The notes beneath the pieces are model-generated. The model ran no database searches. It worked only from the letters and a program-made list of their open reading frames with translations, and was not told the origin of the DNA. Both the position numbers and the translations under genes were made by a program. Shown here piece by piece: positions 8,293 to 51,538 of a stretch of 64,000 nt of DNA (positions within the stretch are counted from its first letter, which is position 1; every line of letters starts with the position of its first letter). The DNA is taken from positions 9,300,001 to 9,364,000 of the forward strand of contig CM060734.1 of NCBI GenBank assembly GCA_030704615.1, in the 5' to 3' direction. The DNA comes from Takakia lepidozioides. Taxonomy: Eukaryota; Plantae; Bryophyta.

Positions 8293-8609
8293 CCCGCCCG
8301 GCCAAGCGATGAATTCTGGTATTTGATGGCACGATAAATACAAAGAGAAAAAATGCAAAGTGCTTTATGATTTACTCAGCCTTCTTCGTCTTCCCGCGCT
8401 GTGCTTCTTGGGATTACCTCTTCCTCAAAGCTGACTCCTTCACCTCCTCTTTCCCACATCAAGGCGCGGGGGCTTGAGCTGTTCTTGCGCTGCCGTTGTA
8501 GCGATTGTGTGTTGATCTCAGCCTTAGGACATCGTCGTTCGTTCTTCGTTGTTTGCTTGACGTTGGTTGTGTTTCTTGCTTGTGTTCAGTCTCTTTTTTT
8601 CACGCGAAA

Positions 8610-10728
<2,119 letters not shown>

Positions 10729-17467: not shown

Positions 17468-20400
17468 CCTTACAAGTGCTCATTCTTAGAGCTGTACACA
17501 CTGAAATCATCCAAGAACACCTGCATGAAATCATCCAGATACTCATGAAAAGATTCACTTATCACTCTCTGAAAGGTTGCTGGTGCATTACAAAGTCCAA
17601 AGGGCATGACTTTGTATGCATAAGCACCCCAGTCTGTGATGAAAGCTGTCTTTGCTTGGTCTTTTTCTGCCACTTGCACTTGATTATAACCACTGAAGCC
17701 ATCCATGAATGAGTACATCTCATGGCCTGCCACAGTGTCCAATACTGCTTCTGTGAATGGCAAAGGGAAAGGATCTTTCTTCGTACAAGCATTCAGCTTC
17801 TTGTAGTTCACACAAACTCTTAGTTTACCATTCTTCTTGGGAACTATCACAATGGGTGACAACCAAATTGTATACTCTATTGGGTATATAAACGTAGCCT
17901 CAGCCAACTTCTTGATCTCTTCTCCAACCTTCTGTGCATGGTTGGGATTCATTCTGTATCTTGTCTGCTTGATTGGTACTGATCATGGTTCCAGTTCAAT
18001 CTTATGCTGACAGATCTCAGGTGGTATCCCTTTTAGATCCTCGTAGCTCTAAGCAAATACATCTCTGTATTTGATGAACAAACTTTTAGCTTCTTCAAAG
18101 AATTCTGGCTCCAAATCAGCTCCTACCTCCACCATCCTTGGTTCCTCTTTAGTTCCCACATTCACTTCCCTCACCTGCTCATCAGCTGTGATTGTCAACC
18201 AGTCACCACTTCATCCTGTAAACTCACAGTGGCTGGTTCCTCTAGGATTTCCATTTCTCCTTCTCTTTCTTCATAGAAATGTGATGGGTAACTGCTGGTT
18301 TCCTCTTCAATTGGTGTTGCTGACACTACACCACAGCAGATACCTCTTAAACAACTTAGGCCTTCCAGTCGCATCTCTGCAACCTGCTCCCACTCTGGGT
18401 GTGCAGCGAACAGGGTAGCTTCTTGCTTCTCATCCAGTCCTCCTCTCCAGTCATACTCTCTGACCCCTCGAGGTCTTCTCGTAGCAGGTAATCTACTAGA
18501 TTTCTTTGTGGTAATTTGTATCTCGTGCATCCCATTATGCACGGTTAGTAACTGAGAATTCCAGTCATGGAATACCCTGTCCTGTTTCAGCCACGGACGT
18601 CCCAATAATAAGGAGTAAGCCTCCATGACTTCATCCATCTTCAACACAGTTACTGTGATCATAAAGATCATCTTCTGTATCTGTATCTTAACTCCTCTTA
18701 TCAATCCCATGGCTGTACACTTCTTTGATCTGCCATTGTTACTGTAAATGGGGCGGGTTTCATGTTACTTAGACCAAGCTTCTTCCTTAATTGGTTTGTC
18801 ATGATATTTACTCCAAAGCCTCCATCTATCAGTACATCAGTTAGTTCTGTGCTTCCAATTCTCAATTGGATTACTGGCATAGAATCATCAAAGTCCATGA
18901 CTATTTCTCGCCCTTCCGGCTTCACATTATAACTGGTCACCTTGCTGTTCAGGTCTGTGTTTCCTGTCTCCTGGGCAATTCGATTGATTGCTTGATACAG
19001 CCTGTGTCTACAATAAGGTGCCACAGCCAATAGCTGTCCAATGGTAATCTCTGCTGTGGTCTGGCATATACTTCATCAGCCAAAGTCCCTTCATTACTTT
19101 GCATGTCTGTAGCTTCTTTCTTCCTTTCATCCTCACTCACTTCTTCTTCTCCATCAGAATCAGAGGAATCTGCCACAGGAATATCAGTACTCTTCTGCAT
19201 TCCCTTATGGTATCTGCCACTTCCTTGTGCAGTTCCTTCTCATCTCTCCAAGCCTCATCATCTTCAGGCATATCACTGCCATTTCCATTATCATCATTTT
19301 CCTCAAACTACTGGAGGTATTGGTTGGCTTTGCTTCTTGTTACTATCATTGTACTTACTTCTGGTACAACACATGGCCTAACCATGTGAGCTGCCACCAC
19401 TTGGCCCTCATTCACAGGAGCTCTCATCTCATTCTGGTGTCTAATCCATAATGAACAGGCTGCCTTGCGATGTCCTGGCTGATTACAATAGTAAACACAG
19501 TTCTTCACCATTGGGTCCTCGCCCTTGGTCTGCTCTTGGATTATTTCTGTAATCCTGCCCTGGTCTGCTCTTGGATTATTTCTGTAATCCTGATTCCCTG
19601 GCTGGTAATTCCCTTGGATTACCCTGATAGTTGCCTCTGGAATTTCTTGGTAATTCCCTCTTGAATTACCTCTCCCTTCCATGCCATTGTTATAACCACC
19701 AGGCCTACCATAGTGGTCCTGATCACTGTTTCTTCTTGGCTGGGGTTGCACTTGATGCACCCTTACTTGCCTAGGTTCTCTTGCAGTTGTCCTTCTGTTG
19801 TAGTAACAATTCTCAGTAGAATGGTTATCCATTTTACAGATAGTACAATGTTTCTCCTTCATGTGGCATTCAGTGGTGGTATGGCCTTCATTCTGGCACT
19901 TTGCACACCAAAACACCCTTCCTCCAATGTGTTGCAGCTCTGTGGCATACTTCTTCAAGATTTCTTTAATCTTTTCTCATAGTTATCCCTCTTCAAACTT
20001 CTCCTTTCTCTTACTATTCCTTTTTAGTTCTTGCTCTTCTTCTTCATCTGACTCATCCTCAGAGTCCTCATCATCCCTTTTCTCTCTCCTGAGCATTCCC
20101 AATTGCTCAATTCTGTTTGCAGTTTCAAATGCCTCCTCCACTGTATATGGGGTAACATATCCACTTTCTTCTGCAACTCTGGTCTTAGTCCACTCACAAA
20201 CCAAGTCTTCTGTAAACCTGGTGCTGGTACAGCAGCCAGCTTTTTCATCATCAATTCCATCTTTTCCATATACTCCTCAACAGTTCATGCTTCTTTTGCT
20301 TTAACTGTTGTAAACTTCCATACACTTCATCCTCAGTTTTTACTTGTCCTGAACCTATTTCGGAATGTTGTATTCAAGCCATTCCAGAATAGGAAATGAT

Positions 20401-25231: not shown

Positions 25232-26170
25232 AGTGTTGAATTCTAAAGCAAGTACAGATCACAATTCAAGCAATGGTAAACTCAAAAAACCTTGAGTGTT
25301 TGTGGTATGCCCTGCGCCATGGCGTCCAACAGATTGTCTCCGACAGAACGCAATCAGAGTAGAAGCATTCACAACTAGAGAGTGGCTCATACACGAAGAG
25401 AGAGCAACAAGTAATCTGTAGATAAATAGGGATAGAGTACTTCCCAACAAGGAGTAAAAGCGCCGCTGCAAAATAAAGAACCATGAATTCCTGATCAGAG
25501 CAATCACGGCTTTGTCGTCTGCCATAGAAGAATCTGTTTAACCACCACTGCGCATCCCAAGAGCCAGCAATCACGAGTACCATGTAGCAGCAGGGGAGTA
25601 GGTTTATACGGCGCATCATCCGATCCAATCCGCATTTTTGTTGGAGGTAGCCTATACTATATGCGCACACAACTGCATGCATATGGAGGAATGTATGCGT
25701 GCATACAAATTTTAGATATGCATAGGAACAATTTTATATGCACAACACTTAAATAAGGGTACCAAAAATAAATAAATAAATTGTGATTCATCTAATCTTA
25801 GGGTCCATAGTCAAAATATCAAAGGATGGAATAAGAATATTCTATATAGAATATTCCATATTCATTGTATTATTGTTCCACATGGGTGAGTGTAGGAATG
25901 GGAGAGGAACATGTTGCTTTTATGGCTTTCCAACATGAGAAAAAAGGTCGAAAAATTAAAAAGTGACGAGGCACGGCTCCTTGTTAGATACAGATGGTGA
26001 AGGTACGGGCTCTTCCAATGGTGGGAGTCTAGTTTGAAGTTCAGAATGGAGCAATGCTAAGGGAATGCTAGGGAGCTTGACAATGTTAGGGAGCTTGTTA
26101 CATAGGTTTTGCAGTATCTATATATCTATCTTCTGAAACATTTTTATTTTACAAAAACATAATGTCCATC

Positions 26171-26228
26171 AGAGATAGAACCCACAACCTATCGGGTATC
26201 AAGCCTAGTTCATACCACTACACTACCC
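26171..26228 (-). other. tRNA-derived (Pol III A/B-box) sequence
   Basis: Minus strand GGGTAGTGTAGTGGTA...AGGTTGTGGGTTCTATCTC; no complete cloverleaf. Confidence 0.5.
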
Positions 26229-26595
26229 ATTCAGACTTGAAACACTAATGAAATGAAACACTAATGAGATAAAGATAGTCACCCTGTGTGTACATAACAT
26301 GCCACAATACTCATAAGGGTTGATCTTATTAATGATGAAATTTGATAGTGCTGAAGTGCATGTCGAACTTGCATTAAGGTAAAGGGATCTATGAAATGCA
26401 GTAGAGATCTATGTACAAACTATTACATAGATAAATCAAATGACAGGAAGATAACATGAAATCTGATTTCAACACCATGTCATTTGCCCCATTTGTTTTA
26501 CCTTACACTAGAGAGAAATACATGTATCATAAAAAATAACAAAAAATTCGGACTGACAATGAGGACAATGTATTGTATATGTAATTTCTAATTAC

Positions 26596-29500
26596 CTACA
26601 TAATATCATCAGCTGATACTTCATCATCCGTGTCATAAGCTTGTGATTCAGAGGCATACACATCCATGAAAGCCTCAACTCTACGCAACCTATCCACGGA
26701 TTGTCCAACAATAGCTGCTCTTCGGTCAAACAATAGATCATTGGAAAGACCTACATCACGTTGTTGATGTATTGAATGCAAAGCTTGGGACTTGGCATAC
26801 GAAGGTAGATAAAACGATGAAAGAGGACTTTGGGGTAGACTATCGTAGATGGTCCGCACAATCCCATCACTGCATCACACATACATGTATACTTATGTTA
26901 ACAAATCAAATGGGAATGGTTTGCTTTGCAAATAATATAGAGATTGCAACAAAGGGAATGGAGGCGAGACATACTCACTAGGAAGTACTGCCGAGATGAA
27001 GACCAAGCTTGCGCGCCACCTTAGGAGCGGGGGGTTCCAACAAACTCACAGGACGTTGAATGGTTGGAGTTACCACAGATGAAACCAAAACGGGTTGAGT
27101 ATTTTGAAGTGCAGAGAGACGTGCTGCATACAACGTCTGGTCCCCCTCAAGACCAAATACGTGACGTCCAGACTCGCGAGCAGCAATAAATGTAGAACCT
27201 GCAGGAAAAAAACATGCAATGATGATATTATATCGGATAACAGTTAATGATCATGAATCAACTCAGAAGATTTTAATTACAAAATGGAGACAACTGATTT
27301 GAAGGATGTGAAGAACTACCAATAGGACCAGCAATAGAAGCCACACCTGCATTGACATCCGCACATTTTCTTTTTCGTGATTTGCGTTTTGGTACACCCA
27401 CAACGGCAGGGACCACTTGGGCTACAGCGTCAGCGGCCTGTGTAGCAATCTGTTCTGCATGCTCCAGATCAAGAACAGGGACTTCAGTGGAGATACCCCC
27501 TTCATCACTCACTGACTGCCTGCGAACACATTCCTTATGAAGTCCCATTTCTGCATAGGGGATAGTACCCTTGGGGCATATCCAAATACCAACCCCCCCC
27601 CCTTCCCGGTGTTCCACACCCCAATCTTCCTCAATTGCAGGTGTGTACATGGAAGCTTGTTGAGCACCAAACTTCCAGGCCATCAGAAACTTGGGCTCAG
27701 CCTTAAGTCGATCACTCGGTACAAGCACAAATCTCATGTACCTAAAATACAAACACATTTAAAGTTATTGTGGAGACAAATATTTGTGCAACATGTTCAA
27801 CAATTGAACAAGCACATTAAGAAACATGTATATCCCAATGTACTAGAAAATACTTGAAGCATAGACATTTTTGACTTACAAGGTGTATACACTATCCATG
27901 TACAATGCAATGGAAAGATGGTACCTGAATAAAATCCGTCTCACCACCTTCTCCCCACCTGTTTGTTGTTCCCAATCATTGCCTCTGAATGGCCCCTTTG
28001 GCAATGAGAACTCTCTATGAAACAACTCATTGAAATGAGTCATCTTCCATGTATCCATGTAGTCTCCTAGACTCTCACTCTCTCCTTCCTCCAAGGCAAC
28101 ATGAAATTGGCCAAGCTGAGTGGTGTACAAGGCAAACTGAGCCAAGGCAACCTTGCGAAGCTGCCAGAAAATACAGTCAGTTAAATAACTATGTTAATGT
28201 GTCATCAACAAAATGAACTAATTGCATTGAGAAGATAGTGATTGTATATGTACCTGCCACCAAAAAGTCCTTCTATTCAGCCAAGGATCAAGTGTTGGCC
28301 CACTGATAGGCCCGGGTGGAAAAAAATTACGGTCGTGAAGTGTTCGGTCTCCATTCCATATATGTAGCCATTCCACCTTTTCTTCAGGATCCACCCGGGC
28401 GGTAGCAATGTTCACCATTTTCTCTTGGGTCATTTCCTCTGATCCTGCCTTTACACGTGACCAATGCAGTTTAAGTTCTTGGAGAAACCCCTCTCCAAGG
28501 GTTGGATCAGCAATAGGAAGCAACTTCACAAGCTGACTCTTGTGTTGCTCCCTTGCTTTCAATCCAGCCTGTCTCATTGTATCTTCAAGGCCCTCTTGAC
28601 TCTTTGGCCCCTCAGCAAGTTTGTAAGCTTCCCCCGCCATGCGTTGGGCCTCAACAATATCATGTTGCCAAAAGAACCAAAACAGTTCATAACATGAACC
28701 AGAGGTGAATCTTGTCTATGGATGCAAAGAATGAAACTTGGTTAAGACATGATGTTACCTTGTACAAAATCTCTGTCATTGCATGGACTGTCAGGTTATA
28801 CCAAGTCTTTCCTGCTTTCTTGATGCATTCGTCGTGTTGCTCTTTCCTCAATACATTCTTCCATTCAGAGACAGGTGTAAGGCCAATCATATTGACCTTG
28901 CAAACCAAGTGCACAAATTTGGATGTAACATGTGCCCTCTCTATTGCCCTGCACATATAAAATATGATCATTAGAAAGAAGATGTGTATATGTACATCCA
29001 TTGAGCAAGAACATGACAACATTGAACATGAAAGTAAATGAAGAATAGAAAGGAAACTCATACATTCACTCCATCCATGATGGACCTGAGGGAACCACGA
29101 TTTTCAATGTCCGCATTGAGCACCCAACTTGTCACACAGATATGTCTTGACAAGTTGGCCCCATGAACTTCATTGATATAGGGATACCATGCTTGAAGCC
29201 TATGATTCCCATCCCAGACATGAAACATCTTCCCCCGAAGATGATGCAACTTTGGCTTGGACTCAAGATACTTCTCAAACTCATCATTGACTATTTTCCA
29301 ATGACTATCCCATGTAGAGATGATATCAGGACCTACATCTATAGTAGATCCATCAATCCCCTCAACAGAACATAGAACACGGCTGCTCCTGGATGGTATC
29401 CAGAATAGAAGTCTCCTCTAAGCTTTAGGATGTCGTTGGCAAGGGCGGGCCTAACAACCTGCATAGAAATCATGCGACACAATGGAATGTCCATAACTCC

Positions 29501-31198
29501 ATCCTCAATGAGGAGGGACCTGAAAGTTACATTCAGATCTTGTTTCTTTTCCAGAATAATTGCCTGTTTGGCATCTAGAGAAAGATGATCACTAGATGTT
29601 GTATCCTCTTCATACTCATCTGCCCCCCAATTCCCTGCATCAATGTCGTCAATAATGGTTGCAAGCGTCCCGGCCTCCACAGCTTCAGTTGTAGTAGTAA
29701 TTTCCTAATTCCATAGACCAAAACAGTTCAAGATGTCAGTGTATGAGGAGAGCACATGTGTGAATGTATAATATGTAAAAAGAGCAGTTCAGTGTCATGG
29801 TTGCATGAAGAAAACAAATGAATTTGGATAGTCAACTAATTCCATGAATATCCTTGTCTTTCAAAGCTTACAACTTGGAGCAGAATACAGGCGTGAGCAT
29901 CCCGACAGAGGACCTCCGACCACCTACGCCGGCGCATATGACACATATGTGCAACCAACTCAAAATTTGACAAGATTTGAGGCCCTTGAAGAAATTTTTG
30001 CTCAAGGAGCTCCAAGCATATGCGCCGGCGCATACCATGGAAGAGAGGTTGTAGCCAAACATACAGGAGCACCTTGAAAGATCAAACTAGGCCTATGGAA
30101 GCATGTGGAGTTGTGGAGGTGGCAACGTAGAAGCTTTGAGATACTTGAATACTGTGATCAACCAAAATAGGGAAGGTTCCCCAAGCGTCTGCGCCGACGG
30201 AGGTGGCAGCCTCGACACTTTGGAGCTTACGTAACACAAGGAATATACAACAAAAAACCAAGCTCCAAGCATCTCCGCCGGCGGAGATGCTTGCATGAGG
30301 TTCCTGAAACCTAGGAGCTAAGCAAAAAAAGATTGTGCTCAATGGGTATGCGCCGGCGGATATGGCAGCCCAGCCCCGCTCGAGCATCAACAACTTATGA
30401 GAATGCGGAGAAACAAAAGAGATGGAAGGGGGGAGAACTTCCTGAAATATGTGAGCAGCCCTGCTGCACGGGTCTGTGTTGACAGAGGTGGCAGCCTTGG
30501 CGCTTTGGAGCTTCCTAACACAGGGAATATGCGCAAAAAAAACAAGCTCTAAGTGTCTCCGCCGGCGGAGACGCTTGCAGGAGGTTCCTGAAACCTATTG
30601 AGCTGAGCAAAAAAAATGTACTCAATGGGTATGCGCCGGCGGATATGCCAGCGCAGCCCATCGGAGCATCAGCAACTTTTGAGCATGCGGAAAACAAAAG
30701 GAGATGGAAAGGGGAGAACTTCCTGAAACATTTGGCAGCCCTGCTGCACAGGTATGCGCCGGCGGATACGCCAGCCCAAACCCGCTCGGAGCATCAGCAA
30801 CGTATGAGCATCAAAAAAATAAACGGGATGGAGTAGAGGAGCACTTCCTGAAACATGCGAGCTCCCCAGCTCCAACGGTATGCGCCGGCGGAGGTGGCAG
30901 CCCAGCCCTTCCAAGCATCAGAAAAAACCAAGGGGAATGAGCTGTCTCCGCCGGCGGAGACGGTTGTGTGTATGTGTGGAGATTCGCAAACTTGTGAGAG
31001 TTGAAGTGACTTAGGCATCTGCGCCGGCGGAGGTGCTAGATTAGGAGCAGCTTGGTGGGGCTTATGCGATGGCGCATATGCCTAAGTGCAGGTCATGAAA
31101 AAAACAAAACTACAGCTTACCTTCTCCGTCCGCAGCTTGCCTCTACCACCACCACCACCAGCAACGCCTCCCCCTCGAGTGTCCTTCTTCCTCCCCAT
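26596..31198 (-). CDS. Transposon accessory gene encoding a ParB/Srx-like domain protein (multi-exon; at least one frameshift)
   Basis: Exon 1 31198-31121 (MGRKKDTRGGG...TEK|gtaag), intron 31120-29705, exon 2 from 29704 with IPLCRMISMQVVRP and FHVWDGNHRLQAW (about 29187-29216). Further exons at about 28949-28778, 28660-28253, 28163-27925, 27741-27340 and down to about 26596. Collinear homologue at 59-64 kb. 3' exon limits are approximate. Confidence 0.75.
29922..31078. repeat. Array of about 16-bp palindromes T(A/C)T(G/C)CGCCGGCG(G/C)A(T/G)A inside intron 1 of the ParB-like gene
   Basis: Perfect CGCCGGCG cores at 29927, 30023, 30276, 30351, 30560, 30634, 30757, 30883, 30949, 31022; variants at 30192, 30477, 31067. 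Embedded in degenerate ~284-bp and ~125-bp repeats. Confidence 0.92.
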
Positions 31199-31483
31199 CG
31201 CCGCAACAGCTCGTTGCCTCGGGGTGGTATAGTATAAGGCCGAGATGCGGCGCCTCCGTCTCCTCTTCGCAACGGGAGTCTCCAGGGTGTAGAGACTAGA
31301 GACGTGTTAAGTGCTTGTGTAGTTTGTGTGTGTTTGTTTGGGGGAGTGGCAAGGGATAATGTGCAAGTATACTAGACTACGTTAGTGTAGTAATGATACC
31401 GGGTTAGTCATGTAGTAATGGCAACAAGTTTAACTGAATAGAAACAGTTTATTAACAAAAAAGTAGAGGTTGTTTCATTGAAT

Positions 31484-31545
31484 AGAGCATGGCTTGTTGG
31501 TAAGGTTGTGGTGTATTTTCCACAAGGTTGCGGGTTCAAACCTGC
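31484..31545 (+). other. tRNA-derived (Pol III A/B-box) sequence between the two divergent transposon genes
   Basis: TGGCTTGTTGGTAAGG (A-box-like), stem TTGTGG/CCACAA, T-arm GCGGG-TTCAAA-CCTGC; no acceptor stem. Confidence 0.55.
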
Positions 31546-32260
31546 CCCGCCAAGGAGAGCGGGGGAAAGGGGGAGGGCGAAGGCTAAGGCCTTAAAAAGG
31601 CCAAATTGGCCAAATCTGAAATGTGAACCTTTTTTATACACTCTGGCGTTAGTGCTTTTTGGACTACATGGGTTACACGTGGATCCTCAGAAGATGGTTG
31701 TACGATTGACATGTTACTTTGTGGCGGCGCCTTCATAATACAATATAAAGTAAGTGATAAAGTAACTAAATATTTTGTTATGGGTGTCTTAATCAATTTA
31801 TTGGTTTTAGAGTCAATTGTCGCCACAAATACTTGTACTCATTACTCATACATGAGTAATCAAAGAACAAATCAACATACATGTCATGGGATTTGATTGT
31901 AAATAAATTGTGCCGTCTAGTGTGTCAGTTCATAGTTGGACGATTAATCAACGATTGGTTGTAAAATAAATGGAAACATGCAGAGCATTTATGTTTCATA
32001 TGCTCATAAGAAGAAGGCAGTACATTGGATTCTAAGATCTCAAACAACGGCGCCGTCGTCTTAAAAATAGGGGATAGTCCATTTAGTTGTTTCTGTCAGA
32101 GAATAATATGGATGGAGCACATGCCTCAAAAAATTTGGACCTTCTGGATTGATGATACACATAAGTAATGTAAGCCATTTAATGTATTTGCATAAGGTCT
32201 TGCAAGATGTGCGCTTTCATTCATTTTGCATCTTCTCTCAAACTTTGAGGGCATTGCCAA

Positions 32261-35200
32261 ATGTCTACACCAAAATATGCAGTGCTTTCATGTCCACCTG
32301 ATGCAAAAGTGGTTCGTTATCCTTGCAATGGAAACAAGTGCATTATCCCAGAACCTTGGTTATGCAATAGATTCAAACTTGTTCCGGGTTCAGTTTTTTT
32401 GGAGGATGATGGAGATGATGATGCCTCCACAGTGTTGCTTCCAGTTTTCAATGACGGCCAAAAGCAATGGGAGTTGTTTCCAGACACTTTCTCCAAGTAC
32501 CGTGTCACAGGTACGAGCTATACACAGTCACATGATGAGAGGCACACTTCTATTGCAAGAAAACGATCAAGCTGCAACAAATGGGAGTTGTAAATTGAAG
32601 GAGGAGGTTGCAGATTCGGCGAGCTTGGGGTCTCATAATTCGGATTGTGTTGAGGTTTCTAAGAGTGTATTTTTGGATCTCAACCTTCCTCATCTGCTCA
32701 TACGGTCTTGCTTCACGACATGAAGCCTCGGAAAACTCCATTGGACAACACCACGTCTGATTGTTGCGAATCTGCGAGGGGTTTATCTTCATCTCCACGA
32801 CTAGCAGGGGAGGCTACATCTGCATTTCCTTCTGGTGTGTTGTCCATTTTGAGTATCTTGGCCACTGCTCGGAGGAATGGATCAAAAGGAGAGCTTTCTA
32901 CCTTGGACTATAGTCACATTCCAGTGCATCGTGTTCGGTGTCTTCCTCGAGCTTTTGATGGAAAAGTGATCCACGAACTCCCCCCCGTGGTCAAACTACG
33001 TACGGACCGTGGTTCACAGTCCCTCCAAGGCATGGACCGCAAGTTTGATGGTCATCCTTGGTGCAAGACCAATACCTACAATATGTCTGGTGTTCCAGAT
33101 CATGTGAAATGTAGTAAGGTTTGTGTTGGAAAGCTCATATGTCAAAGCAGCACTTGCCCCTTCTTCAAGAAAGAAGGAGAACGGAATGACCGCTATTGGG
33201 AAGGCAATGCAGACAAGGTGTTCATTGCAGGAGCCCAAGTTCCATTCAACCAGTTCAAGTGTAGTTTCTGCAAAGAAAGACCTTTCTGTGAGGCGCATTG
33301 TGGGGCAAGAATGTACTATGTCACAAGTTCCCTTCCAACATATACACGTGTTGCAGTTCACGTTGGGTTTCATAACCATCCATGTGCCAAGGGCGAGAAT
33401 AGAGAGCGAAATGCATCAAGCATGATTCAAGAGCACGTTAAGATGAAGCCATGGTCGACCCCCGGAGCTATTTCCTTGTCAATGGCCCAAAAGCTCTTGA
33501 TTGATCGAGTTCTTGTGGCTGATGGCACAGAGACAGTACGTCTTGAGGGAGAGGCTTTGGAAGATATTCTTGAAGAGTTTGCCCATGTTTGTAGCCCCAA
33601 TGTGAAAAACAAGGTCGCATCTGCACGTGTCAATTCCATCATGTCCATATTGGAGTTGAAGCGTCTGAGTACATACCATTTCATTCACAGCAATCTCCTT
33701 CCAGGCCAGCATACTTCTCATCTCCCCCATGTTTTCAAGATGTCTGTTGCTGGTCCCGGGAGTGGTGTTGATCTTGTGCGTCGCATGAGTGAGGGGGATC
33801 TACGCACAAGTTGGGTAGTATTTGACCATGTCAAACGCATCAAGGATTGGACAACTCTTGCGTGTCATGTCTATGAACCATATGTCAAGCGAATGATGAC
33901 CATTGCCATTTGCGATATGAAAACAGAGGATGCAGATGCTCAGGTGTTATTCTGGGAGATGATCAATGAACAAGCAAAACTTGCTGGCTTGAACAAACCA
34001 AATTTTGCTGGCTTCATGGCGGATGCAGCAGGAGCGAATTGGGCTGCTGTTCGAAGGGTTTATGGATCTGATCCCAATGTCCCAATGGAAGGTAAAGAAA
34101 GAACATGTTTATATCATTGGGCTGAAAGCCTCCGAAGACACACCAACGACTATATCTTGGAGGACTTCCGTGAAAGGCACACTCAGCTCTGTTATGAATG
34201 GAAAGATAGTGCTACCTTGGAGGATGCTACAACCACATACATTGCAATTCGGGCTTGGTGGCTCTCTTCAGGAGCATGCACAGAAAAGAGTCTGCCAAAA
34301 CTAGATTCATGGCTTGCATGGTGGCACTACAGATATCGAATGTGGGGCCAATGGATGAGAGAGGACATGGATGTGGAGGCAGATGCAGATATGCCTACCA
34401 CTAATTTGTCTGAGGCAGTCCATTCTGCTTGGTGGAAGACAGCAGGCAATGGGAAAAAAATGAAGGTGGATCTATATGAGGCCACCATGCATGACATGTC
34501 ACGAGCTCTTTTGCAGCAGGCAACATTTTACAGGCACACCACAGGAAAGACATGGGGGACGGGGCCCGACAAAGAGGAGCTCATGTTGCGTCAAGCAGCT
34601 AGATCTAATAGCCCAGCAAAAATGGGTAAGGTTGTACGTGGCATAGTAGCTGGAACACCCATGCACACAAGGGGGGTTCAATTGGAGGGAGACAATCGCA
34701 CTATTCCAGTCAAACGCAAGTTAGGCGATGAGCATGGTGGGCCAAACGAATCTTGGAGGTGTGATATGAATGTAAAGACTGTTCCAGTGCGCGCCCACTG
34801 GGATGCCCAGTCCACACCAGCCATCTAGGTTTGTCAGCTCCAAATCAAGTCATGACATTCCTGGTTCTTCGACTTTCTGTGAGACAAATCCACATGTTGC
34901 TATCCCTCCTCAGCCAATGCAATGGGGAAATCCAGTGAGAGAGACACAAGACTTTTCCGATGCATTGTTCAGGATTCAGCGGACAGGTCCTGCTTCCATG
35001 GTTCGTTGTTCTGCCTTGGTTGGAGTTTCCAAAGATAAATGCAAAGCGCTCATCAGGAAAGGTAAAGGAAGTCCTGCACCTTGCTTCACTGGCAAGTTAC
35101 TAGCACCGAACATGAAAGAACCAAAACTGCAAGTTTTTTGGTTTTGCCCCACAGATGTTTTGTCGTGTGTTGGAGGGACCGTGCCATCCTATTGCTTGGG

Positions 35201-35792
35201 AAAACCGGGTATACCTAACGTGTGGCCTGTGAAGGTTGGAACCAACCTTACACAAGAAGAGGTGGACAACTTGACCCTTGCAGGTTTTTTCGACTAGTCC
35301 ATCCTCCCAACGTTCCTGATCCGAACTTTCCTGTGGGACCACTTCCAGTGGAACAACATATTCATCAAGGTGTTGTCCTTCCTGTGGGTAAGTATCCCAC
35401 TACACGCTATGGGGTGCGCATTCGGCGTCGGGATCCGACTCCTCGACACTTGAGTCGCCAAGAGTCAGCGGAGACTCTTATTGCTGAGGTTCGTGGATTC
35501 AGAAACGTGCCTCAGCCAGGTTATGGGAGAATTTACCAGCTACAAACAGAGGGATCTACCAGAGCAGGATTGGTTTACAATGTATACATTGGTCAGTTTC
35601 CATCTTGTGATTGTCCCGACTTTGATGAGCTATCTGTCAAGAAAAAAACAAACATATCTACCTTGTAAGCACATGTACTTCATGTACAACGTGCATCTAG
35701 GATGCGCCGGGGCTTATGAGATCCACCAACCTTCCCTTAGCCAGTTAGAGGTTAGGGCTATGCTAAAGAAGGACCCTAGTTCAACTTCTTAG
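32261..35792 (+). CDS. MULE-family DDE transposase with GCM-like N-terminal Zn domain and C-terminal SWIM finger (frameshifted in this assembly)
   Basis: ORF 32708-34828: W.KTNTYN..SKVCVGKLIC...C...CSFC...C.ARMY...VHVGFHNHP (WRKY/GCM fold), VFDHVK (D1), FMADAA (D2), CLYH (CxxH), TTNLSEAVH (E). SWIM CDC...CKH at about 35605-35673. Probable first exon 32261-32510. Confidence 0.88.
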
Positions 35793-36410
35793 TGACACAT
35801 GAAATGCACAAAAAAAGAACCTCTAACTTGTGCCGTTCATTTTCATGCATGTGACATGTAATCTGTTACTCTTGATTCCAAACATGACACATAGCATTTG
35901 TTAGTACAAAGTTCCTATTTTGGTTAAAATGGAACTTGTGTACCTGTCATACAAGTTTTCAAATTATAGAACTGCTGCTGGCATTACAAACAGACATGCA
36001 ATGTGGTGGTTCCAAACATGACACATATGCATTTGTTAGTACAAAAGTCCATATTTTGGTTAATATGAAACTGTTTTCCTTGAATACAAGTTTGCAAACT
36101 ATTACTTTGGCCAGGGATCTTGTATTCTCTTCAGTTTAAGGTGGTGCATTAGTTGGAGTTAGTGGTCACATGCATCTTTGACCATTGACTACTGATTTTG
36201 TTAGCTAAGATTTTTTTATTTTTTTTTTTTTTCTATACATATGATGTAACATTTGCATATGCAATAAATACGTCGTATTCTATGTTATATAACTCCACTG
36301 CATACAATCTACAATCTACAATGTGTGCATACAAATTTGTCACATGCATATATAATAAAGGATTTTGTGCATGCATGCACGCAACCTGTGCATATGGAAT
36401 AGCAACCTCC

Positions 36411-39400
36411 TTTTTGTTGGAGAGGATCATCATACCTTATGAGGTATTTGTTGCTCCACACTATTGTTATGGAGGTATAGGGGGCTGATACCCCATGGCT
36501 TTCCTAGACCCATGCAAAAGCCATTAAAGGTGTTAGTACATCATAGTAAGAAAACTGGAAAATGGCAGGTGAGAGAGTGAGAGAGTGTGTACAGAAACCA
36601 CTAAGTACACTGGTCAAGAATAGAGAGGGAAGATACTATGTCTCGTCGGGACATGGACAAGACCAAACCAGGTCTTTGTCAAATTAACGACAAATCAGCC
36701 TCATAACAAGGAACTATCTAACTTCACCTTCCATAGACAGTATCTTACCTGATAAAAACTCATGTCATCTTCCTGAAAACACATGAAAAATTAGGGTGGG
36801 AGGGTGGGATTTCCAAGACAACCATCACCCTAGATTCAGAATATGTCATTCATCATTGAAGGAGTCTTGTTTTTCTTATAAAACAATCGGACCAACACCA
36901 CCTTTGGTACATACCAGATCAGCATAAACACTTGAGCCTTTAAGAATGAGTTGCAGGTGTTTGCAATTCCAAGAGCCCAGCCTGATAATGTAGACCAGCC
37001 AGCATGCTATGTCAATGTTCCATGAATGCACAAAGGTCTGGATCTGGTTTTCCAATCATCTCTCCAAAACTCAATCAGAGTGGAATGCTACAATGAGCAT
37101 AATCACAACTTTATAGACAACACCAACTCAAAGGGTATTCCAAAAGGCTAGTTTGATAAGTTAAACCAGCCCCTGTGTATTTTGAAAAAGCCCAACAAGA
37201 CCACTGCTCGGTATTCTTCCAAGTCAAGTACTGCTTGGTACTTTCCAAGTCAACATAGTAAAACTGAACCTGTTTCAAATTCAAAGGATGGTTCCAATGG
37301 CATCGCTTGGCAACTTAAAAACATTGTTATGTAATCTGAAAAGCCCATCACGCCAGCTGCTTGGTAATCTCTAAGTTAAAACAGTGTAACCAGGGCTGTT
37401 TTAAATTTAGAACTCTGACCTCAATGTTCAAAAACTACCGCTTGGTACTTACCGTGTTAAATCAGCATAAGAAGGCCTATCTTAAGCATCATTGGATAGC
37501 CTTATAAGGTCTGGAGATGGTACTCCAGCACCATATCAAAATGCAGCCGAAGCTCAGACTGGTATCATGCCAGAAAACTGATTTACAATCGGGTCGAAAA
37601 CCCCACTAATATGGTGCCAAAGTTCAGACTGGTATCATACCAGAAAACTGACTTATAATCAGGTTACAACCCATAAAAACCAAAAAGGACTAAGGTTGAG
37701 AGGCCGAATCGTATCAGATGCCCCACTGAAGCAGTATGTAGCGTCAATCGTCACCATCGCCAAGTCCTTTGATCATCTGCAAACTGAATAAAAAATACGC
37801 ATCAAGTGAAGACCCTCACCTGTGCCCGTCCCAAAAACCACCACATCAAGATGTGTGTTAGTGAGGATGCACGAGGTGAGTAGCAGGTCTTCACAGTTGC
37901 TATCCATGTCCAACATGCATAAATTGATCAAAAGTAAAACATAGATGCGACACCACAAAGAACTTTGATCGTTTGTGGAGTGGGACGCTGCGGCATTCAA
38001 CACCTGAATCTCAAGAGATCGCAGCAGAATGCAACAAATTGGGATACTTGAGGACAAATTGCATATTTACAAAGTGCATGATACTTCCCCCATCACCTTA
38101 TGAGCGCTGCTGCTTCATGAATAAGAAAGATTGCATGCAAACACAACAGTAGGTCACTTGCCAGTGCGGGAAATGGAAGGGCCTGCCGCCATCGCGCAAG
38201 AAAAAACAAAATGCACGCGGATCGTGATGCTCGAGCACTTAGCTCAGCTGCCGTCGCCATCCTCCAGAGAAAACTAGCACGAGTATCGTGCCGTGCTTAG
38301 GGTAGAGAGGCGGTTAGCAAACCATCCCGTGATTTCATCCACTGGGATGAAATTTTGCACTTCATTAGAGTTACATCCTCTTAGGTTTACATCCGTTACG
38401 GTAACAACCATGATGGATGTAATCCGTCATGGATGAAGAATTGCCGGCTACATCCTTAGTGGTAAAGCTCAAGACAATAATTCATCCAGTTAGGGATTAT
38501 ACCTGGCATATTTTTCATCCGGTATGGATGAAATTCAAAACATGTTCCATCAGGGATTAGAAAGAAGGTATTTCCAAACCAGGTAGGCTTAGGAATTTTT
38601 TTGTTAATCCCAAACAGATAATTGGAGAGAGGGAGAGAGAGGGAGAGAGGGGGCGCCCACCATCCAACCCCTGGCATGGCAGTCCCTTATGGAGTGAGTG
38701 TGGTATGCACTCACCCCGTAAGGGAGTGCATACCAGACCCATTCTCATAAGGCTCTCCCTCTACAATGTAGTTCTATCCTTGGACTTGAATACCAAAAAG
38801 ATAAAAGGTCTACATTCTCTCTGCCCTCAGATCACGAGTGAACATTGGCATAGCATAAATCAAACTTGGCAAGAATATAGAGTCATGCGTTTTCCATGTT
38901 ACCTCTTATCTTGTCAACGAGCTCTTGTAAAGAAGTAGAGAACAAGGAAGGATCTCCGCGCGATGTAGTTTTATCTTTGGTTAAAAAGCTACAGTCTTTG
39001 CTTCCCAAGTCAAGAGAAAATATGGACAAAACATTCATATAGCTGGGCACGCAAGAGTTCAGAAATTACAGGTGTTCTTCAACCGATGGCAGTAAATTAC
39101 TACACATTTTTCCACCATTTCAGCCAACTTTATGGTTAGAACCGTTTTTCCAAAGGTATGAATAAGAACTTGTGTTCTTCAGCCAGTGGCAGTAGCCTAC
39201 TGCCCGTGATTCACAACATGAACATGTGAATAAAATTGGCAACAATCTGCTGCCCATCTTTTCACCATATCAGCCAGCTTTATGGTTTTAAAACCAGATT
39301 TCCTTCAGGTATAGAAAAAGGACATATCACGTTACACCTGGGCATTTTTTTAGTGGTGCTATAAAGAGCAAACCCACATCCAGGAGAAGTATTAAAGCCC

Positions 39401-43639: not shown

Positions 43640-44830
43640 ATTGTGTCCGCACAATTTTGTCAGTGCCTGTGGCTCTGGGGAATGTAGGGTGGTGGCATGC
43701 CCTGCTGTTAGCTTGTCTGCTGGTTGAGGAGTGCCTCCCATGTTGGTGATGGCTTTGGTGGCAGCTTCTTGTTCCTGTTATCGTCGCTGTCTGGTGCCTC
43801 CTTTGGCTCCTGTATGGGCCATCTCTCCTCATCCGGGTGTTCTGATTTCCGTCCCTGCATAGTGTATCTATCTTGGTGGACATGGCCTTGCAGTAACTGA
43901 GTAGCTCCTCCATGGTCCAAGGCACAATGTCTCAGGTTGCCCTGCTACTCATTAACCAGTTAACTGCTTGTGTCGCTGTCTCCTTGAAGGGGTGGTCTCT
44001 ATCCAGTACCAACGGTGAGAAGTGCTCTTTTGCCTAGCGCCACGCTTCAGCATAGAGTGGTCTGTCTACATATGCTAAAGTGCCCGAGACTCTCTCTGGT
44101 GGATGGAATTTGGGCAATTCCCAGTGGGTATCCTTGTCAATGCTCTTGTATCGCTGCCAACTTGCCCGCATTGTGGTGAGCATCCTGTACAGGTAACTGC
44201 CAATGTAAAAGCTTGGGGAGCCCATTACCACATCAACTGCTGGGGTGGGGTTGATCTTCAATTGCCCCACTGCCCACATGTAGGCTACCAACTCCTTGTA
44301 CTCCAGGGGAGCTTGGCGCCAAAATTCTACCAATTCTGCCCTTGACCATGTCTCATCCTTGCCAAGTGGCCGCATTCTGTATCTCAGGGGTATGAGCGTC
44401 TGATTGAGCATATGCAGCTGGCCTAATGACTTGCAGGAGGTTAAGGCCTTGAATGCCTTTTCCAACATGTCTAGGATTTGCTGGGCTGGCATGATCATCA
44501 TCTTGAAGTATTCCTCTGAATACTTGAGCCATTCCCATCTCGTTTGCATGGCATGATTTGAAAATCATCCACTGCTACTGAAGCTGATGCCACAAGAATG
44601 CTTGGTAATGGCACAGTGGTTACCTCTTGGTTGGATGGCCCTGCTGTGGCCTGTACCTATTCATGTTCAAGCTGTGGTGGTTGTACCGCTGGTGGTGTTT
44701 GTGCTGGAGTTGTTGTTGTTGATTGTATTGGTGCTTCTTATTTTTGTTCATGGTCTTGTTCCTCCTGTTGATCCTCGTCCATTAGTTCCTCTTGTTCTAG
44801 AATTGGTGGGGGGGGGGGGGGGGGGTGGGT
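43640..44830 (-). pseudogene. Degenerate unknown ORF immediately upstream of the PPT (extra 3' ORF of a gypsy-type element)
   Basis: Overlapping minus-strand ORF pieces (44549-44034, 43925-43614) with helical, protein-like composition; no recognised pol motifs. Confidence 0.45.
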
Positions 44831-45138
44831 TTCTATGAGCAGTGAGCACCCAAAAACATGAGCAGAGGCCGAATAATGGGCTAAAAGTGGATTTTTTAAG
44901 AATATTCCCTCCAAAACACTCAATATCGGGGGTGTTTATGGGCCCAAAACGCCTTATTTTGGGCTAAAAAATAGAGCACAAATTGTCAGTTCCGCATGCA
45001 AGACGGGTTCGGCGGCGTTGGCACTTCCGCAAGTTGGCAACGATTTGCAGGCAAGAAACCGTGGTTGCAGCCACGTGAACGTACCCACGGTAATAGGTGG
45101 GGTTTCTATAACCGTGGAAAATTACATGGCTTAACATG

Positions 45139-45491
45139 GGAAGTCGGCGCATAATTGGATGTGTGCTGGACAAGACACTCAGAACTGACAAGTCGGCACA
45201 GCCTTTGTGATGGCCCGTACAGTTGTATAGGGTTTGGGAAGTCTGCACAAACTTCTCCATGGTCCATACAGTTTGGGAAGTTGGCACAGACTTCTCCAAT
45301 GAGCGGAAGAAGTATATTTCAAATGGTAAGTCGGCACTGTATTCGACATGGCCTTCAGGCCTCATTTTGAGATGGGAAGTCGGCACAGACTTCCCCATAT
45401 CCTTCAGAAGATTCTTTGGAATGGTAAGTGGGCATCGCATAGAAGATGGTCTCCAGGTGTGACAGAGAATTGGAAGTCGGCACAGACTTCT
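45139..45491. repeat. Dispersed array of hyphenated palindrome GAAGTC-GGCACA-GACTTC
   Basis: About 7 full or half copies at about 45140, 45190, 45237, 45276, 45327, 45374, 45472. Confidence 0.8.
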
Positions 45492-46313
45492 ACATATCAC
45501 TTGCATGTTTAGGTGGGATCTGAAATCCGTGCAAAATTGTGGGGTGTGCGAGAAAAAGAGCACCTTGCGGCATTTCACAGAGTTCGTTCCGGACTTAGTA
45601 CAAGATCTACTGCCTGCACCCTCTCAGGCAAAAGTGAACATGCAACAAAACTCAACATTGCAGAAAAAATGGATCTTTTGCCGAGGATCGAAACGCCTTA
45701 CTGCAACAACATTGCTTACGACCACTCATGATACCGCTTTTTGGCGTCACTTGAGCAAGGGTTCACCTTGAACCTTTTTTGACTAGGAAGATAACCTTGA
45801 ACCAACCTTGCGCCCCAATCACTGGAATTGGGTCCGCCTTGGAATGCTGGCATGAGGTATGAGAACACGCCGAAGCCGCACTACGACTTCGTCTCAAGGT
45901 TACACGATTATAGTACGTGAACGGAAGCACGTAGCTTCCGCGTTAGCCCGCACTACAAGGCAACCCTCCGGTAGCGCAGTTTTAGAATGCGCACGCGCCA
46001 GGTGCGCACTAGCACGTGAATTCCCAAGGAAGGCGCAAGTTTCCTTGCCCCTTGGATGGGAGTCACCCGATTTCGGCGCTGCGCAAACACACAATTAATC
46101 CAATTTACCTCTCCCACTTTTTGTAAGCTAGCATGCATTCTACACACTAGCCAACCAGACCATGCATCACCATTCCAAACAAAATAGGAAGCACAACATT
46201 TGGAAACAATTTCATTTATAAACAAAATTTGTACAACACAAGTCTTTGCAATCGGATTCCTAAGCTAGCTAAGCCGGACTAAGCATGCATTTCCTCCCCT
46301 ACGATCCAAGGTT

Positions 46314-46443
46314 CATTTGGCATACATGTCAACAATGGTGTTCTCTAAAATGATGTCTAGGGCAATTCCACATTTGATGATGTCAGCATGAACCTTTGTA
46401 CCCTTCTCCAGGGCTCCTAGGCTGGCACACGCATTGAAAACCC
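46314..46443 (-). pseudogene. Isolated PPR fragment (about one repeat)
   Basis: Manual translation VFNACASLGALEKGTKVHADIIKCGIALDIILENTIVDMYAK. Confidence 0.8.
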
Positions 46444-46444
46444 A

Positions 46445-46893
46445 TCAACACTTCTTCCGCTTTTGAGGTCGCCCTTCGAAAGCTACAACCGCCTCGGATA
46501 CGTTTCCCATTTCTGAGGCACGCACCCAAGTTGCCTCCACTTGATGATAGCCCTTCCATTTCACGAGATACTCCGTTTCTCGATTCTTGAACCTCCTCGA
46601 CTTAAGCACTGCCTCCACCTCGTACTCAGGTTCATTTTCATGATCCAACGGCACAGGTGGCGGATGTAACACTTGATGCCGATTCGGACGCGCTTCATGT
46701 TTGAAGTAAGGCTTCAAAAGGGAAACGTGGAATATCGGATGCACCGTGCTGTTTGCCGGCAGCTCCAATTCATAAACATCCTCATTCATAACCTTCCGGA
46801 TGCAAAAATGCCCCGCATACGGAGGTACGAACTTTGGACTCACTTCCGGAGGTAGTCCAAAATTCTTGATGTTCAACCAGACCTCCATGCCTG
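46445..46893 (-). mobile_element. Chromovirus (Ty3/gypsy) integrase C-terminus with chromodomain
   Basis: KFVPPYAGHF (GPY/F region), YELELP...HPIFHVSLLKPY, EYEVEAVL..R.....EYLVKWKGY...ATW. Confidence 0.92.
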
Positions 46894-48629
46894 TGTCGTG
46901 GCCCTTTGCCTTGAGGGCGGGGGGTCGGGACACAAGAGGGGCTTCCCCTGTGGTGGGGGCAGTGGCAGCAAATAGGAAAGGGGACTGAAGCACCCTTGAG
47001 TGCCGAAGGCACTCAAGGAAGCGGTGGTGCTCACTAGGTGGAGCCCCGCAAACCGGGTTGCGGTGGTGGGGGCTCCACAAGGGGTGGTGGTAGCGTAGGG
47101 AGTCATAGTGGGGGTGACATAGGACTCACCATGAGGCTGAGGCCTTGTGGTGGGAGTCGTGGGGAGTCTTGGGACTCGCCACGGTCCATTGGGGCCGTGG
47201 TGGGTGGGCCAAGACTCACCACGGCTCACCATTGGGACGATTGAGGGTCTAAGTGGTGGTGCACCAGATTTGGACTGTGCTACTTGTGGAACCCCCCCGG
47301 ACACCTACAAAAGTATATATAGGGAGTAGTAACCCCGAGAACGGTGCAAGCCCGTTGGTGACCAAAAACTAGTGAGTAAGCGTGCGAGCCGGAAAGCAAC
47401 CAAGGTGTGGGGAACTGTTCCGAAGTGCCATCTATCAAAGGGAATTTCCACTGAGCCCGACAGGTTGAGGATCGAGTGGGAGTGTGAGGGGGATGGTTAT
47501 GCCCCGGTGAGCAGCCGAAGCTCCGAGTTGGCCCGGCGGCCGGTTTGGGAGTTAGGCGTGCGCATCAAAGTGAGTAACTATGACTTGAAGGGGAGTTTAC
47601 CGAAGTGAGGTGCGCGACATTTGGTATCAGAGCTTAAAGTTTAGTACGCGATTGTCCTTGAGATCGGCCTCACCATGGGGTCGGGCAAGACAAAGCGAAA
47701 GCGGAACGGCCCGAAAGACGATGATCCTGGTGAGCCCGGTGGGGGCGACGTGTCACCACTGCGGCAAATGGAAGAGGCGATTTATGCTTCTGAAAAGCAA
47801 GGCCGCTCAAGAACGGGAGGAATTTGGGGAGTCGGAGCCCGAGGACTTCCCAAAGGCTCCGCCAGACCAACAGATGTCTCCCATGCCAGCAGCGGGAAGG
47901 GTTGTTGGCGCAGTTTGGCGGGACGTTGAAAGACGTGATGAGGGCGGCTAATGCCACTTCCACTAATGCAAAAGTTTAAGGTGAAGCCTAAGGAACCCGA
48001 CACCTTCGAGGGCGTCCAAAATTGGAAGGCACTCAACACTTGGCTCTTGGAGCTGGAGCAGTACTTCCGGGCGCCAAGTTGAGTGACGAGGATCGGGTGG
48101 AAGTGGCTCCCACCTATTTGAGGGGCTATGCTCAACAATGGTGGCAGAAGTGTCTTCATGACCAAGGGCCAAACCCAGAAACCTTGAGCTGTAGTGGGTT
48201 CAAGGAACTTATGAAAAGACAGTTTGTGCCCCTCAATGCGTCCTGGCTCGCCCAGGACAAGATGAGGAACTTGAAGCAAACGGATGACATTCGGGGATAT
48301 GTTCAGGCTTTCAATGTGTTGTTGCTCGAAGTCGCGGATATGGCAAAACCAGAAATGGTCTTCAACTTTGTGGCGGGACTGGCCCCATGGGCCAGACGGA
48401 AGTTGGAGGAGAGGCCACCAAAGACTTTGAAGGAGGCAATTGAAAGGGCTGAATGTTTCTCGGATGTCCCTAGGAGCGAAAGACGGGGCCGTACGGAGCT
48501 GAACCACAAGAAGGTCCGGCAAAGAAGTGGGATAGGCCACGCGGGCGCAATGACACATGGAAATCGAAGGGAGGGCCTTCGCACGTCAAGGCGGCGCCCG
48601 GTGCTCCGAAAGGAAAATCAGGTGCAGCG
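46894..48629 (+). mobile_element. Gypsy 5' LTR (46894-47619), tRNA-iMet PBS (47622-47633) and truncated gag
   Basis: LTR TGTCGTG...CGCGACA, PBS TGGTATCAGAGC, retrotransposon gag motifs (PDTFEG..WLLELEQYF, YLRGYAQQWW, LKQT..IRGY..F, FVAGL). Confidence 0.88.
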
Positions 48630-48802
48630 GTGGCGGTGCGTCAGAAGGAGGACATGAAGGGATTGCTTAGGTGGATTGAGCATTTCATGGTCAAGTACTG
48701 GAACAAGCTTTTCCACTACGAGATGGTGGAGGGCCCACATAGGAGCTGGGGTGTCCTTGAGCAGCCAGGGGGGATGCAGCCTGCACGTCAATTTGTCTAC
48801 AG
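48630..48802 (+). pseudogene. Exon fragment of a third homologue of the ParB-like transposon accessory gene
   Basis: LLRWIEHFMVKYWNKLFHYEMVEGPHRSWGVLEQPGGMQPARQFVYR|gt aligns by eye with LRDYVTRYFLLYKTDLFFREIPHAHRSHEFTDQPNGDKAAMRLLYR|gt and ...HFNELFHREFSLPKGPFRGNDWEQQTGGEKVVRRILFR|gt, with the same splice position. Confidence 0.7.
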
Positions 48803-50468: not shown

Positions 50469-51300
50469 TGGTATCAGAGCTGATGTTGTCCTCTGGCTCT
50501 GTTGAGTTCCTTTGTGACAGATTGCTTTGTGCATGTGTGAATACATAGCCCGGATCGTGTTGATTTGACCTACTTGTAGTAACGAAGCAACTTGCAGGAT
50601 GTTGGGTCTTTAGCTGTGAACAAGAAACTCTACAGGTTGGGTCTTCAAGTAATCCAGGTTCAGAAGGGAACAACGGCTGAGAAGGGAGAGTCCAAATAGT
50701 GCGCATCCGAGAATCTTCCACGGGCCAGGCTTTCCACAACAAGCCCTTAGACAGCGGCAAGTGCAACTCCACAAAGAAGGAGGCATTAAAATTGTTGAAT
50801 GAAAAGCTGGACGTGAAGAAGTAATCAGCTAAGTAGGCAACAGACATCCTGAGAAGACCGGTACATGCTGAAGTGGTGCATGAGGGAGAGACGCTAACTG
50901 GAGGAGAGATTTGTTCAAGCAAAAACTGACATTCACGAGGAGCCTTTACAAAACACATGAGGCACTGGGAATCACAGGTGAAGGGAGTAATGTGAGCAAA
51001 AATATGCTCAAAACAAGCACCATGCAAGGTACCATCAGCCCTGCTGGGGTGGGTGTCCCTTTTTCTGGCACTCAATCCGAAGATGTGGTGGAATGGTTTG
51101 AAAGAGTGCAAAGGGCCATGGATGAGGCGATAAGTAAAGATAAGCTTCCCAAGGTGGCGAGACTAAATTTGTTTGGGAGGGCTGATACCTGGTACAGAAT
51201 GCAACAGCCACAACCATCAAACTGGCATGAATTACAAGCTGGGCTTTTGAAGAAGTTCGGTGGCACGAACGAGGAGAAGCTTGCTACTGCTACATCAAAC
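50469..51300 (+). mobile_element. LTR retrotransposon relic: iMet PBS and gag fragment
   Basis: TGGTATCAGAGC at 50469-50480; FSGTQSEDVVEWF...LFGRADTWY...WHELQAGLLKKF. Confidence 0.7.
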
Positions 51301-51538
51301 CCTCACGAGGAGATGACATGGAGGCAGCCGCTGAAAGGTTCAAAAGAAGGAGATCAAAATATTCTTGGTGGAAGGATGAAGTTATCAGATCCCAACAGGG
51401 ACAAAGGCGAGCTAGATGGCTCACCAAATCAGGTATGGAAGCCGGGAATCATGGCATCTAAGGAAGTCTACATTGATGGGCAGCCAGCAGCAGACACAAG
51501 AATTTGCACCATATATGTGGTGTGGCTCCCGTTTTAAG

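Follow-up and report, generated by a model that had tools for sequence, protein, structure and literature searches.

What would a spliced ParB-like gene do inside a plant transposon? The question is raised by a 64,000-nucleotide stretch of the Takakia lepidozioides genome (contig CM060734.1, positions 9,300,001 to 9,364,000; here called the window), in which a Mutator-like element (MULE) of 10,768 bp (25643 to 36410) codes for a transposase on the forward strand and for an eight-exon accessory gene on the reverse strand. The original prediction described such an element, bounded by terminal inverted repeats (TIRs) and a target-site duplication, with a MULE transposase and a divergent multiexon gene for a ParB/sulfiredoxin (Srx)-type protein; an 8-bp TTTTTGTT duplication, the element termini, and the corresponding open reading frames (ORFs) are all present. 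The description of the product as a ParB-type protein was incomplete, since the family protein is predicted to be a fusion of a ParB/Srx domain, probably a helix-turn-helix (HTH) domain of the ParB type, and a beta-class N4C/N6A methyltransferase-like domain. We favor, with moderate confidence, a role as a self-recognition factor that acts on subfamily-specific palindromes and counters host silencing of the two divergent promoters, with or without methyl transfer. The methyltransferase-like C terminus, the palindrome array, and the extent of decay of this copy go beyond what had been predicted.

The spliced accessory-gene model was searched exon by exon, and structures were modeled for the homologues P0033 and P0190. 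For the model of the intact homologue P0033 (predicted local distance difference test [pLDDT] score, 94.6), the top 49 Foldseek rows are all members of the ParB/Srx superfamily (E, 0.01 to 1.5), as are 12 of 12 rows from VIA (best Z, 7.1; root mean square deviation, 2.9; 95 aligned residues), and the matches include Noc, ParB, sulfiredoxin, PadC, KorB, SerK, and SbnI. The evidence lies in the uniformity of the list, as no single structural match is significant alone, and the individual scores are modest because of a 50-residue insertion. On this homologue's model the predicted ParB/Srx fold of the N-terminal domain is confirmed. The domain is undetected in Pfam, NCBIfam, and PDB sequence searches. 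Weak matches to PelD and the RuBisCO small subunit were taken as chance.

The nucleotide-binding residues named in the original prediction (a GxxR-type motif, a box-I-like Arg, and a downstream Asn) are kept across approximately 38 homologues. With box I and box III assigned by position, the Arg is present in 34 of ∼38 aligned homologues and the box III Asn in 31 of 33; each of the five positions of the [DE]GNHR P-motif is kept in 35 to 38 of ∼38. The Glu of the GERR motif is catalytic in canonical ParB, and this family has Asn at that position in all 38 homologues. Orphan ParB-fold proteins bind ATP, CTP, or GTP with a specificity that is unpredictable from sequence (10.1101/2025.10.10.680097), and one phage ParB partner still works after mutation of its nucleotide residues (PMC13229309); for both reasons we treat the term CTPase clamp as a hypothesis. 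Pattern scans, which are insensitive, found no relatives in bacterial or archaeal genomes or in IMG/VR.

The C-terminal domain is methyltransferase-like. The lycophyte homologue P0190 matches Pfam N6_N4_Mtase (PF01555) above the cutoff (E, 4e-8), and the domain is also matched by DpnA structures and phage methylases. Its motifs follow the PF01555 order, IV ... X-I-II-III, with an S-adenosylmethionine-binding motif I that reads DLTAGTG in the family. The window copy retains only the tail of this domain: a contig of run X5 (record 10) has ∼1,026 extra letters at 27291, and loose ends at the deletion are seen also in runs X4 and X7. The loose end reads D-L-T-A-G-T and gives a full motif I when joined to the next exon, and the deleted interval contains a motif IV-like MDMIIVDCPMG in the related locus L002. 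P0190 is Diphasiastrum complanatum O6H91_08G053900, a ParB-methyltransferase homologue with a fused N-terminal Myb domain, seven annotated isoforms, and a near-canonical motif I (DPFVGCG), and is possibly a host domestication or a chimeric gene model.

The N-terminal and C-terminal domains are separated by a helical region, modeled with a pLDDT of 90. Among the best 50 rows for this middle domain, the only whole-length matches are 6s6h, a ParB DNA-binding domain on parS (Z, 5.2; 112 aligned), and 8qa8, the KorB DNA-binding domain (Z, 4.9; 102 aligned), both with scores within noise. The KorB match begins right where the N-terminal KorB match stopped, and the assignment as a ParB-type HTH is a lead supported by this position.

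The accessory gene has eight recognizable exons, running from 31198 down to 26596 on the reverse strand:

31121 to 31198, reverse: exon 1, placed by its ATG and predicted donor site
29062 to 29704, reverse: exon 2, ParB/Srx-fold domain, with a frameshift near 29368 and a broken donor at 29061
28759 to 28948, reverse: exon 3, putative ParB-type HTH domain (first half), 79% identical to L002
28254 to 28664, reverse: exon 4, putative ParB-type HTH domain (second half), acceptor broken at 28665
27925 to 28160, reverse: exon 5, 75% identical to L002
27340 to 27741, reverse: exon 6, linker, with a 3' end that is uncertain owing to the deletion
27291: breakpoint of the ∼1,026-bp deletion, private to the window copy, with loss of motifs IV and X and the first half of motif I
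26979 to 27198, reverse: exon that codes for methyltransferase motifs I (its end only), II, and III (STFIAARESGRHVFGLEGD)
26596 to 26869, reverse: last exon, acidic tail and stop, 58% identical to L002

Exons 2 to 8 are found in the same order in L002 (47 to 79% identity). Both exon 2 peptides quoted in the original prediction are present, in two frames that are split by a 1-nucleotide deletion near 29368, and contigs of two other samples have the extra base. Relative to contigs of other samples, the window copy has this deletion and, in addition, broken donor and acceptor sites at 29061 and 28665, respectively, the deletion of 1.03 kb, and some other small indels. Judged from its sequence, this is a pseudogene copy with an intact palindrome array that is able to make neither protein, and it could act solely as a target in trans. 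The gene itself evolved under purifying selection, with a ratio of nonsynonymous to synonymous substitution rates (dN/dS) of 0.10 between the window gene and L002 over 463 codons, at which synonymous sites are near saturation. The second half of exon 2 matches 265 clusters (at 50% identity), and full-length homologues of 830 to 1,120 amino acids are present in Adiantum and Diphasiastrum.

The likely target of the protein lies within its own first intron:

29920 to 31080: palindrome array in intron 1, with 10 exact CGCCGGCG cores and one to three degenerate ones (perfect palindromes of 8 to 28 bp, spaced by 66 to 209 bp)

All ten exact CGCCGGCG cores of the window are in this intron (29927 to 31029; 0.09 expected), placed centrally in the element with none near an end. 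Each well-preserved subfamily has a palindrome of its own, in an array that lies between the two genes or inside them: GAGGTGCC-N6-GGCACCTC in L005 (14 copies at ∼138 bp), CTTGCGC-N2-GCGCAAG in L001 (10 copies at ∼182 bp), GCCTCGGATCCGAGGC in L086, TTTCGC-N2-GCGAAA in two ferns (L085 and L090), and a 118-bp array in L088. These palindromes differ from that of the window yet occupy the same general position. These subfamily-specific arrays lend support to the original proposal that the protein marks its own DNA.

The ends of the element and its transposase are as follows:

25635 to 25642: left target-site duplication, TTTTTGTT, 8 bp
25643 to 25668, forward: left TIR, short and imperfect
32708 to 34828, forward: main ORF of the MULE-like transposase, 706 amino acids, with a GCM-like Zn finger and a D..D..CxxH..W..E core
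34803 to 35792, forward: C-terminal part of the transposase, SWIM-like CxC..CxH, broken into three frames
36386 to 36410, reverse: right TIR
36411 to 36418: right target-site duplication, TTTTTGTT, 8 bp

The two ends of the element (GGAGGTAGC.. and GGAGGTTGC..) can be aligned over ∼26 bp with a single gap, and the TIR is thus short and imperfect. In contigs of run X4, from another sample, the element exits at 25643 into five different flanks. TIRs with a target duplication of ∼8 to 10 bp are typical of Mutator-like elements, and 8 bp is at the low end of that range; it is also the duplication length of Zisupton. The 706-amino-acid ORF has 23 homologues (35 to 43% identity), whose alignment keeps the GCM-type Cys/His finger and a core with two aspartates and CxxH; TTNLSEAVH follows the core in the window's own protein, and the frameshifted C-terminal part corresponds to a continuous second ORF in the relative L001. 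These motifs were picked out by eye and are conserved among homologues. Pfam, NCBIfam, and PDB sequence searches with the transposase gave no match, and the MULE assignment rests for that reason on motifs and architecture, with a DDE core containing CxxH and a TTNxxE-type third acidic motif, an N-terminal WRKY-GCM1 finger, and a C-terminal SWIM domain as the reference (PMC1702500). The closest relatives from named organisms are those of ferns and a lycophyte. Assemblies of just 3 to 5 million letters contain ∼70% of the sampled words, and contigs are mostly 95 to 99% alike or better, with a summed depth in the thousands (depth is not copy number); from assembly content, contig likeness, and depth, the element family appears to be young and abundant.

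Is the accessory gene a regular partner of the transposase? Among ∼18 independent ParB-anchored loci with several kilobases upstream (duplicates removed), 12 have a transposase head-to-head, namely 4 of 4 fern loci and eight in metagenome contigs; the remaining loci are L002, L033, L043, L072, L078, and L083. Of five loci anchored on the transposase instead, two (L003 and L086) carry the accessory gene, two (L001 and L088) show an array but no such gene within 10 kb, and the fifth, L087, has a retrotransposon inserted in it. We note that L001 (3000 to 9947) and L088 (4000 to 10000) carry clear palindrome arrays with no ParB match within 10 kb upstream, and may have other cargo or have lost the accessory gene. 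At L038 and L051 the ParB and transposase identities disagree, and the L038 ParB is 67% identical to the window gene and its transposase 38%, hinting at module exchange between subfamilies. The sequences point to a long association of the two genes with some exchange; strict co-inheritance is not claimed, because codivergence is marginal and these two loci are discordant.

The anatomy of the intact family is thus a ParB/Srx fold, a helical domain, and a beta-class amino-methyltransferase-like domain, conserved, usually placed head-to-head with a transposase, and accompanied by palindromes of its own, and from this anatomy we infer all of the functional steps. In the mechanism that we favor, the protein would dimerize and read the family palindrome through its ParB-type HTH. 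Nucleoside triphosphate (NTP) binding, whether of CTP or ATP, would serve for loading and perhaps sliding, such that the protein coats its own element only. On the coated element the two divergent promoters would be kept out of host 5-methylcytosine and heterochromatin silencing, either by writing N4-methylcytosine (4mC) or N6-methyladenine (6mA) or, given the degenerate motif IV described below, by noncatalytic binding or shielding of cytosines. The mode of work would resemble that of VANDAL VANC, with unrelated parts, and also that of the bacterial ParB-type anti-silencer VirB.

Several observations weigh against this self-recognition role. For the middle domain, the Z scores are within noise and Foldseek came back blank. 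Catalytic motif IV, (D/N/S)PP(Y/F/W) in beta-class enzymes, reads D/N-x-P-[E,S,M,T,I,F] here (DCPM, DCPE, DIPE, DYPE, DVPS, NVPE, DLPT, DFPT, and DFPI, with an aromatic residue in just DLPF and DVPF); across the family the acid and the second proline are kept, and in most cases E, S, M, T, or I stands in place of the aromatic. That aromatic residue stacks on the flipped base, and its frequent loss places methyltransferase catalysis in doubt. Pairwise identities of ParB and transposase are weakly correlated (rho, 0.33; P = 0.054), and several more decayed moss-type loci have a weak array or none that is clear. Outside the sites, the CpG ratio of intron 1 is 0.42 versus 0.35 to 0.38 in the flanks; the intron is about as depleted as its surroundings, and there is thus no sign of long-term protection. 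RNA runs holding the accessory gene were sought and none was found.

A second ParB-type gene in the window (59045 to 63515, reverse strand) bears on which part of the protein is constant. It is diverged (∼35 to 45% identical to the first) with the same exon order, and after the linker it has frameshifts and then a RING-H2 finger (Pfam E, 3e-7) in place of the methyltransferase domain, making it a candidate fusion. Its intronic array (61130 to 61720) has approximately nine GGAAAWTGGCGCCRAWTTTCC-like palindromic sites in alternating orientation, one every 72 to 74 bp. This gene suggests that effector domains are exchangeable, and the degenerate catalytic motif together with the RING variant suggests that the ParB-HTH part is the constant targeting module. 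A more ambitious proposal, which we consider tentative and on balance unlikely, is that land-plant Mutator-like elements possess a full nuclear ParB-parS-type system, with NTP-gated clamp loading on subfamily palindromes, sliding over chromatin, and delivery of an effector that can be exchanged (a methyltransferase-like domain in the first gene, RING-H2 in the second, and a 2-oxoglutarate [2OG] oxygenase in red algae) against silencing of the element itself. If true, this would give eukaryotes their first ParB clamp that slides on DNA, and with it a programmable module for chromatin targeting.

The same anatomy would also suit a self-limiting regulator that loads at the palindromes, acts at a distance to repress one of the divergent promoters or both, in the manner of plasmid KorB, and so limits transposition instead of opposing the host. 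The array adjoins both promoters, each of the two domains has KorB among its best structural matches, and ParB-fold gene regulators are known (10.1101/2025.10.10.680097); however, the family looks very abundant and a repressor would not need a methyltransferase-like or RING domain, and we regard this alternative as doubtful.

The short, imperfect TIRs of just ∼26 bp raise the prospect of a transposition helper, one that compacts or bridges an element of 11 to 15 kb such that its poor ends pair, or that retains or segregates excised copies. ParB proteins do bridge and condense DNA, but all ten exact sites are central with none near an end, and the methyltransferase-like domain is left unexplained. 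Neither the element nor the called genes of related loci showed a ParA-like ORF, although no ParA-profile search was made. The central placement of the sites, with no ParA seen, disfavors the end synapsis and segregation roles suggested in the original prediction, and we consider such a helper improbable.

Ranked next, and likewise improbable, is the idea that the palindromes are sites for the GCM-like finger of the transposase, with the ParB-methyltransferase-like protein acting elsewhere, on host DNA, insertion targets, or RNA. L001 and L088, which pair a transposase with an array and lack a ParB match within 10 kb, would fit, and MULE transposases can reportedly regulate their own copies. 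Set against this, the arrays lie inside accessory-gene introns, in the window's second gene also, palindromes of 16 to 24 bp fit an HTH dimer, and in algae, elements whose transposases are unrelated likewise have ParB genes together with such arrays (10.1101/2025.02.11.637652).

Passive cargo of the Pack-MULE type, from a host gene fragment captured once, is very improbable and already largely refuted: although about a third of loci are without a nearby transposase and a host Myb domain is joined to one of the lycophyte homologues, a dN/dS of about 0.1, the 265 clusters at 50% identity, the head-to-head linkage in ferns and moss-type contigs, and the exon order kept in L002 all argue for a real transposon accessory gene, as had been predicted.

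How new is such a system? The original prediction took it to be new, but ParB-methyltransferase genes and inverted-repeat arrays were described in brown and red algal transposons in 2025. The Ectocarpus element Sola1-1_Ec32, a giant DNA transposon, has, like the window element, a gene that combines a ParB-like with an N4C/N6A methyltransferase domain and runs on the other strand from the transposase, and the gene is proposed to bind and modify its own element (PMC12477816). Likened here by domain description, it differs in its brown algal host, its Sola1 transposase, and the lack of any mention of a palindrome array. Bostrychia Plavaka PAG2/PAG3, present also in Chondrus Mutator elements, include a ParB-like gene beside tandem inverted-repeat arrays (10.1101/2025.02.11.637652). 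Red algal Plavaka, Mutator, and Zisupton elements all have ParB-like genes, with arrays beside them in Plavaka and the same function proposed; the Plavaka cassette includes an N6-adenine methylase and moves between transposon families (10.1101/2025.02.11.637652). Unlike the window element, Plavaka has ParB fused to a 2OG oxygenase, a separate methylase gene, a red algal host, and an EnSpm-type transposase. In the window family, as in the algal class, a DNA transposon houses a ParB-like gene that includes a DNA-modifying domain and lies next to inverted-repeat arrays, and by its sequence the window system is a land-plant variant of this recently noted, experimentally untried class of transposon cargo. 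We found no paper on land-plant versions in a literature search that covered few subscription journals and not Repbase.

VANDAL elements of Arabidopsis are likewise Mutator-like, with an accessory gene (VANC) and subfamily-specific motifs in tandem repeats of noncoding regions, and these repeats differ between related elements (PMC5735166). VANC has been called the sole transposon system known to bind and modify its own DNA (10.1101/2025.02.11.637652). It is set apart from the window gene by description, not being described as ParB-like and having other described domains than those found here, and its function was shown experimentally. VANC motifs are short and are not long palindromes. With bacterial ParB-parS, KorB, Noc, and VirB the window family shares the N-terminal fold, the GxxR P-motif, a probable HTH behind it, and palindromes of the 16-bp class; it differs in having GNHR for GERR, in being spliced, in insertions of ∼50 residues in the N-terminal domain and ∼35 residues in the HTH, and in that no ParA was seen. 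ParB-N6/N4-methyltransferase fusions are common in phages (10.1101/2025.10.10.680097). The ParB-type HTH-Dam family of Iyer 2016 was set aside, as its methylases form another group and that work does not present the family as cargo of transposons.

Two further comparisons are eukaryotic. A similar fold is predicted for fungal DUF3723 proteins (TM score, 0.57, with model me9ace7c5a47c; feature match, 0.89), which are without a methyltransferase and travel in Starship elements; no paper containing both DUF3723 and ParB was found in the literature searched. The Marchantia DN4MT1 4mC methyltransferases are also bacterial-type beta-class amino-methyltransferases in a land plant, but they are host genes with a canonical TSPPY and no mention of a ParB domain, and a link sought in their paper was not found (10.1101/2021.02.12.428880).

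ParB-based cargo has so far been proposed for algae without a test, and the window family extends it to bryophyte-type, lycophyte, and fern genomes. The family also offers test material: its many subfamilies differ in their palindromes, the nucleotide pocket is conserved, and an intact gene can be picked from among young copies that are nearly identical. It bears on whether ParB clamps function on eukaryotic chromatin and whether transposons add 4mC or 6mA to plant genomes.

The window contains other features as well. Short degenerate tandem repeats are located at 35894 to 36102, downstream of the transposase, and at 58569 to 58948, downstream of the second ParB-type gene (135-bp and 120-bp periods). 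A host gene that by sequence codes for beta-tubulin lies at 8505 to 10728 on the forward strand, and fragments of copia- and gypsy-type long terminal repeat retrotransposons are found at 1387 to 2130, 17470 to 19958, 44034 to 48657, and 50911 to 51537, one of which has a chromodomain-like end at 46445 to 47080.

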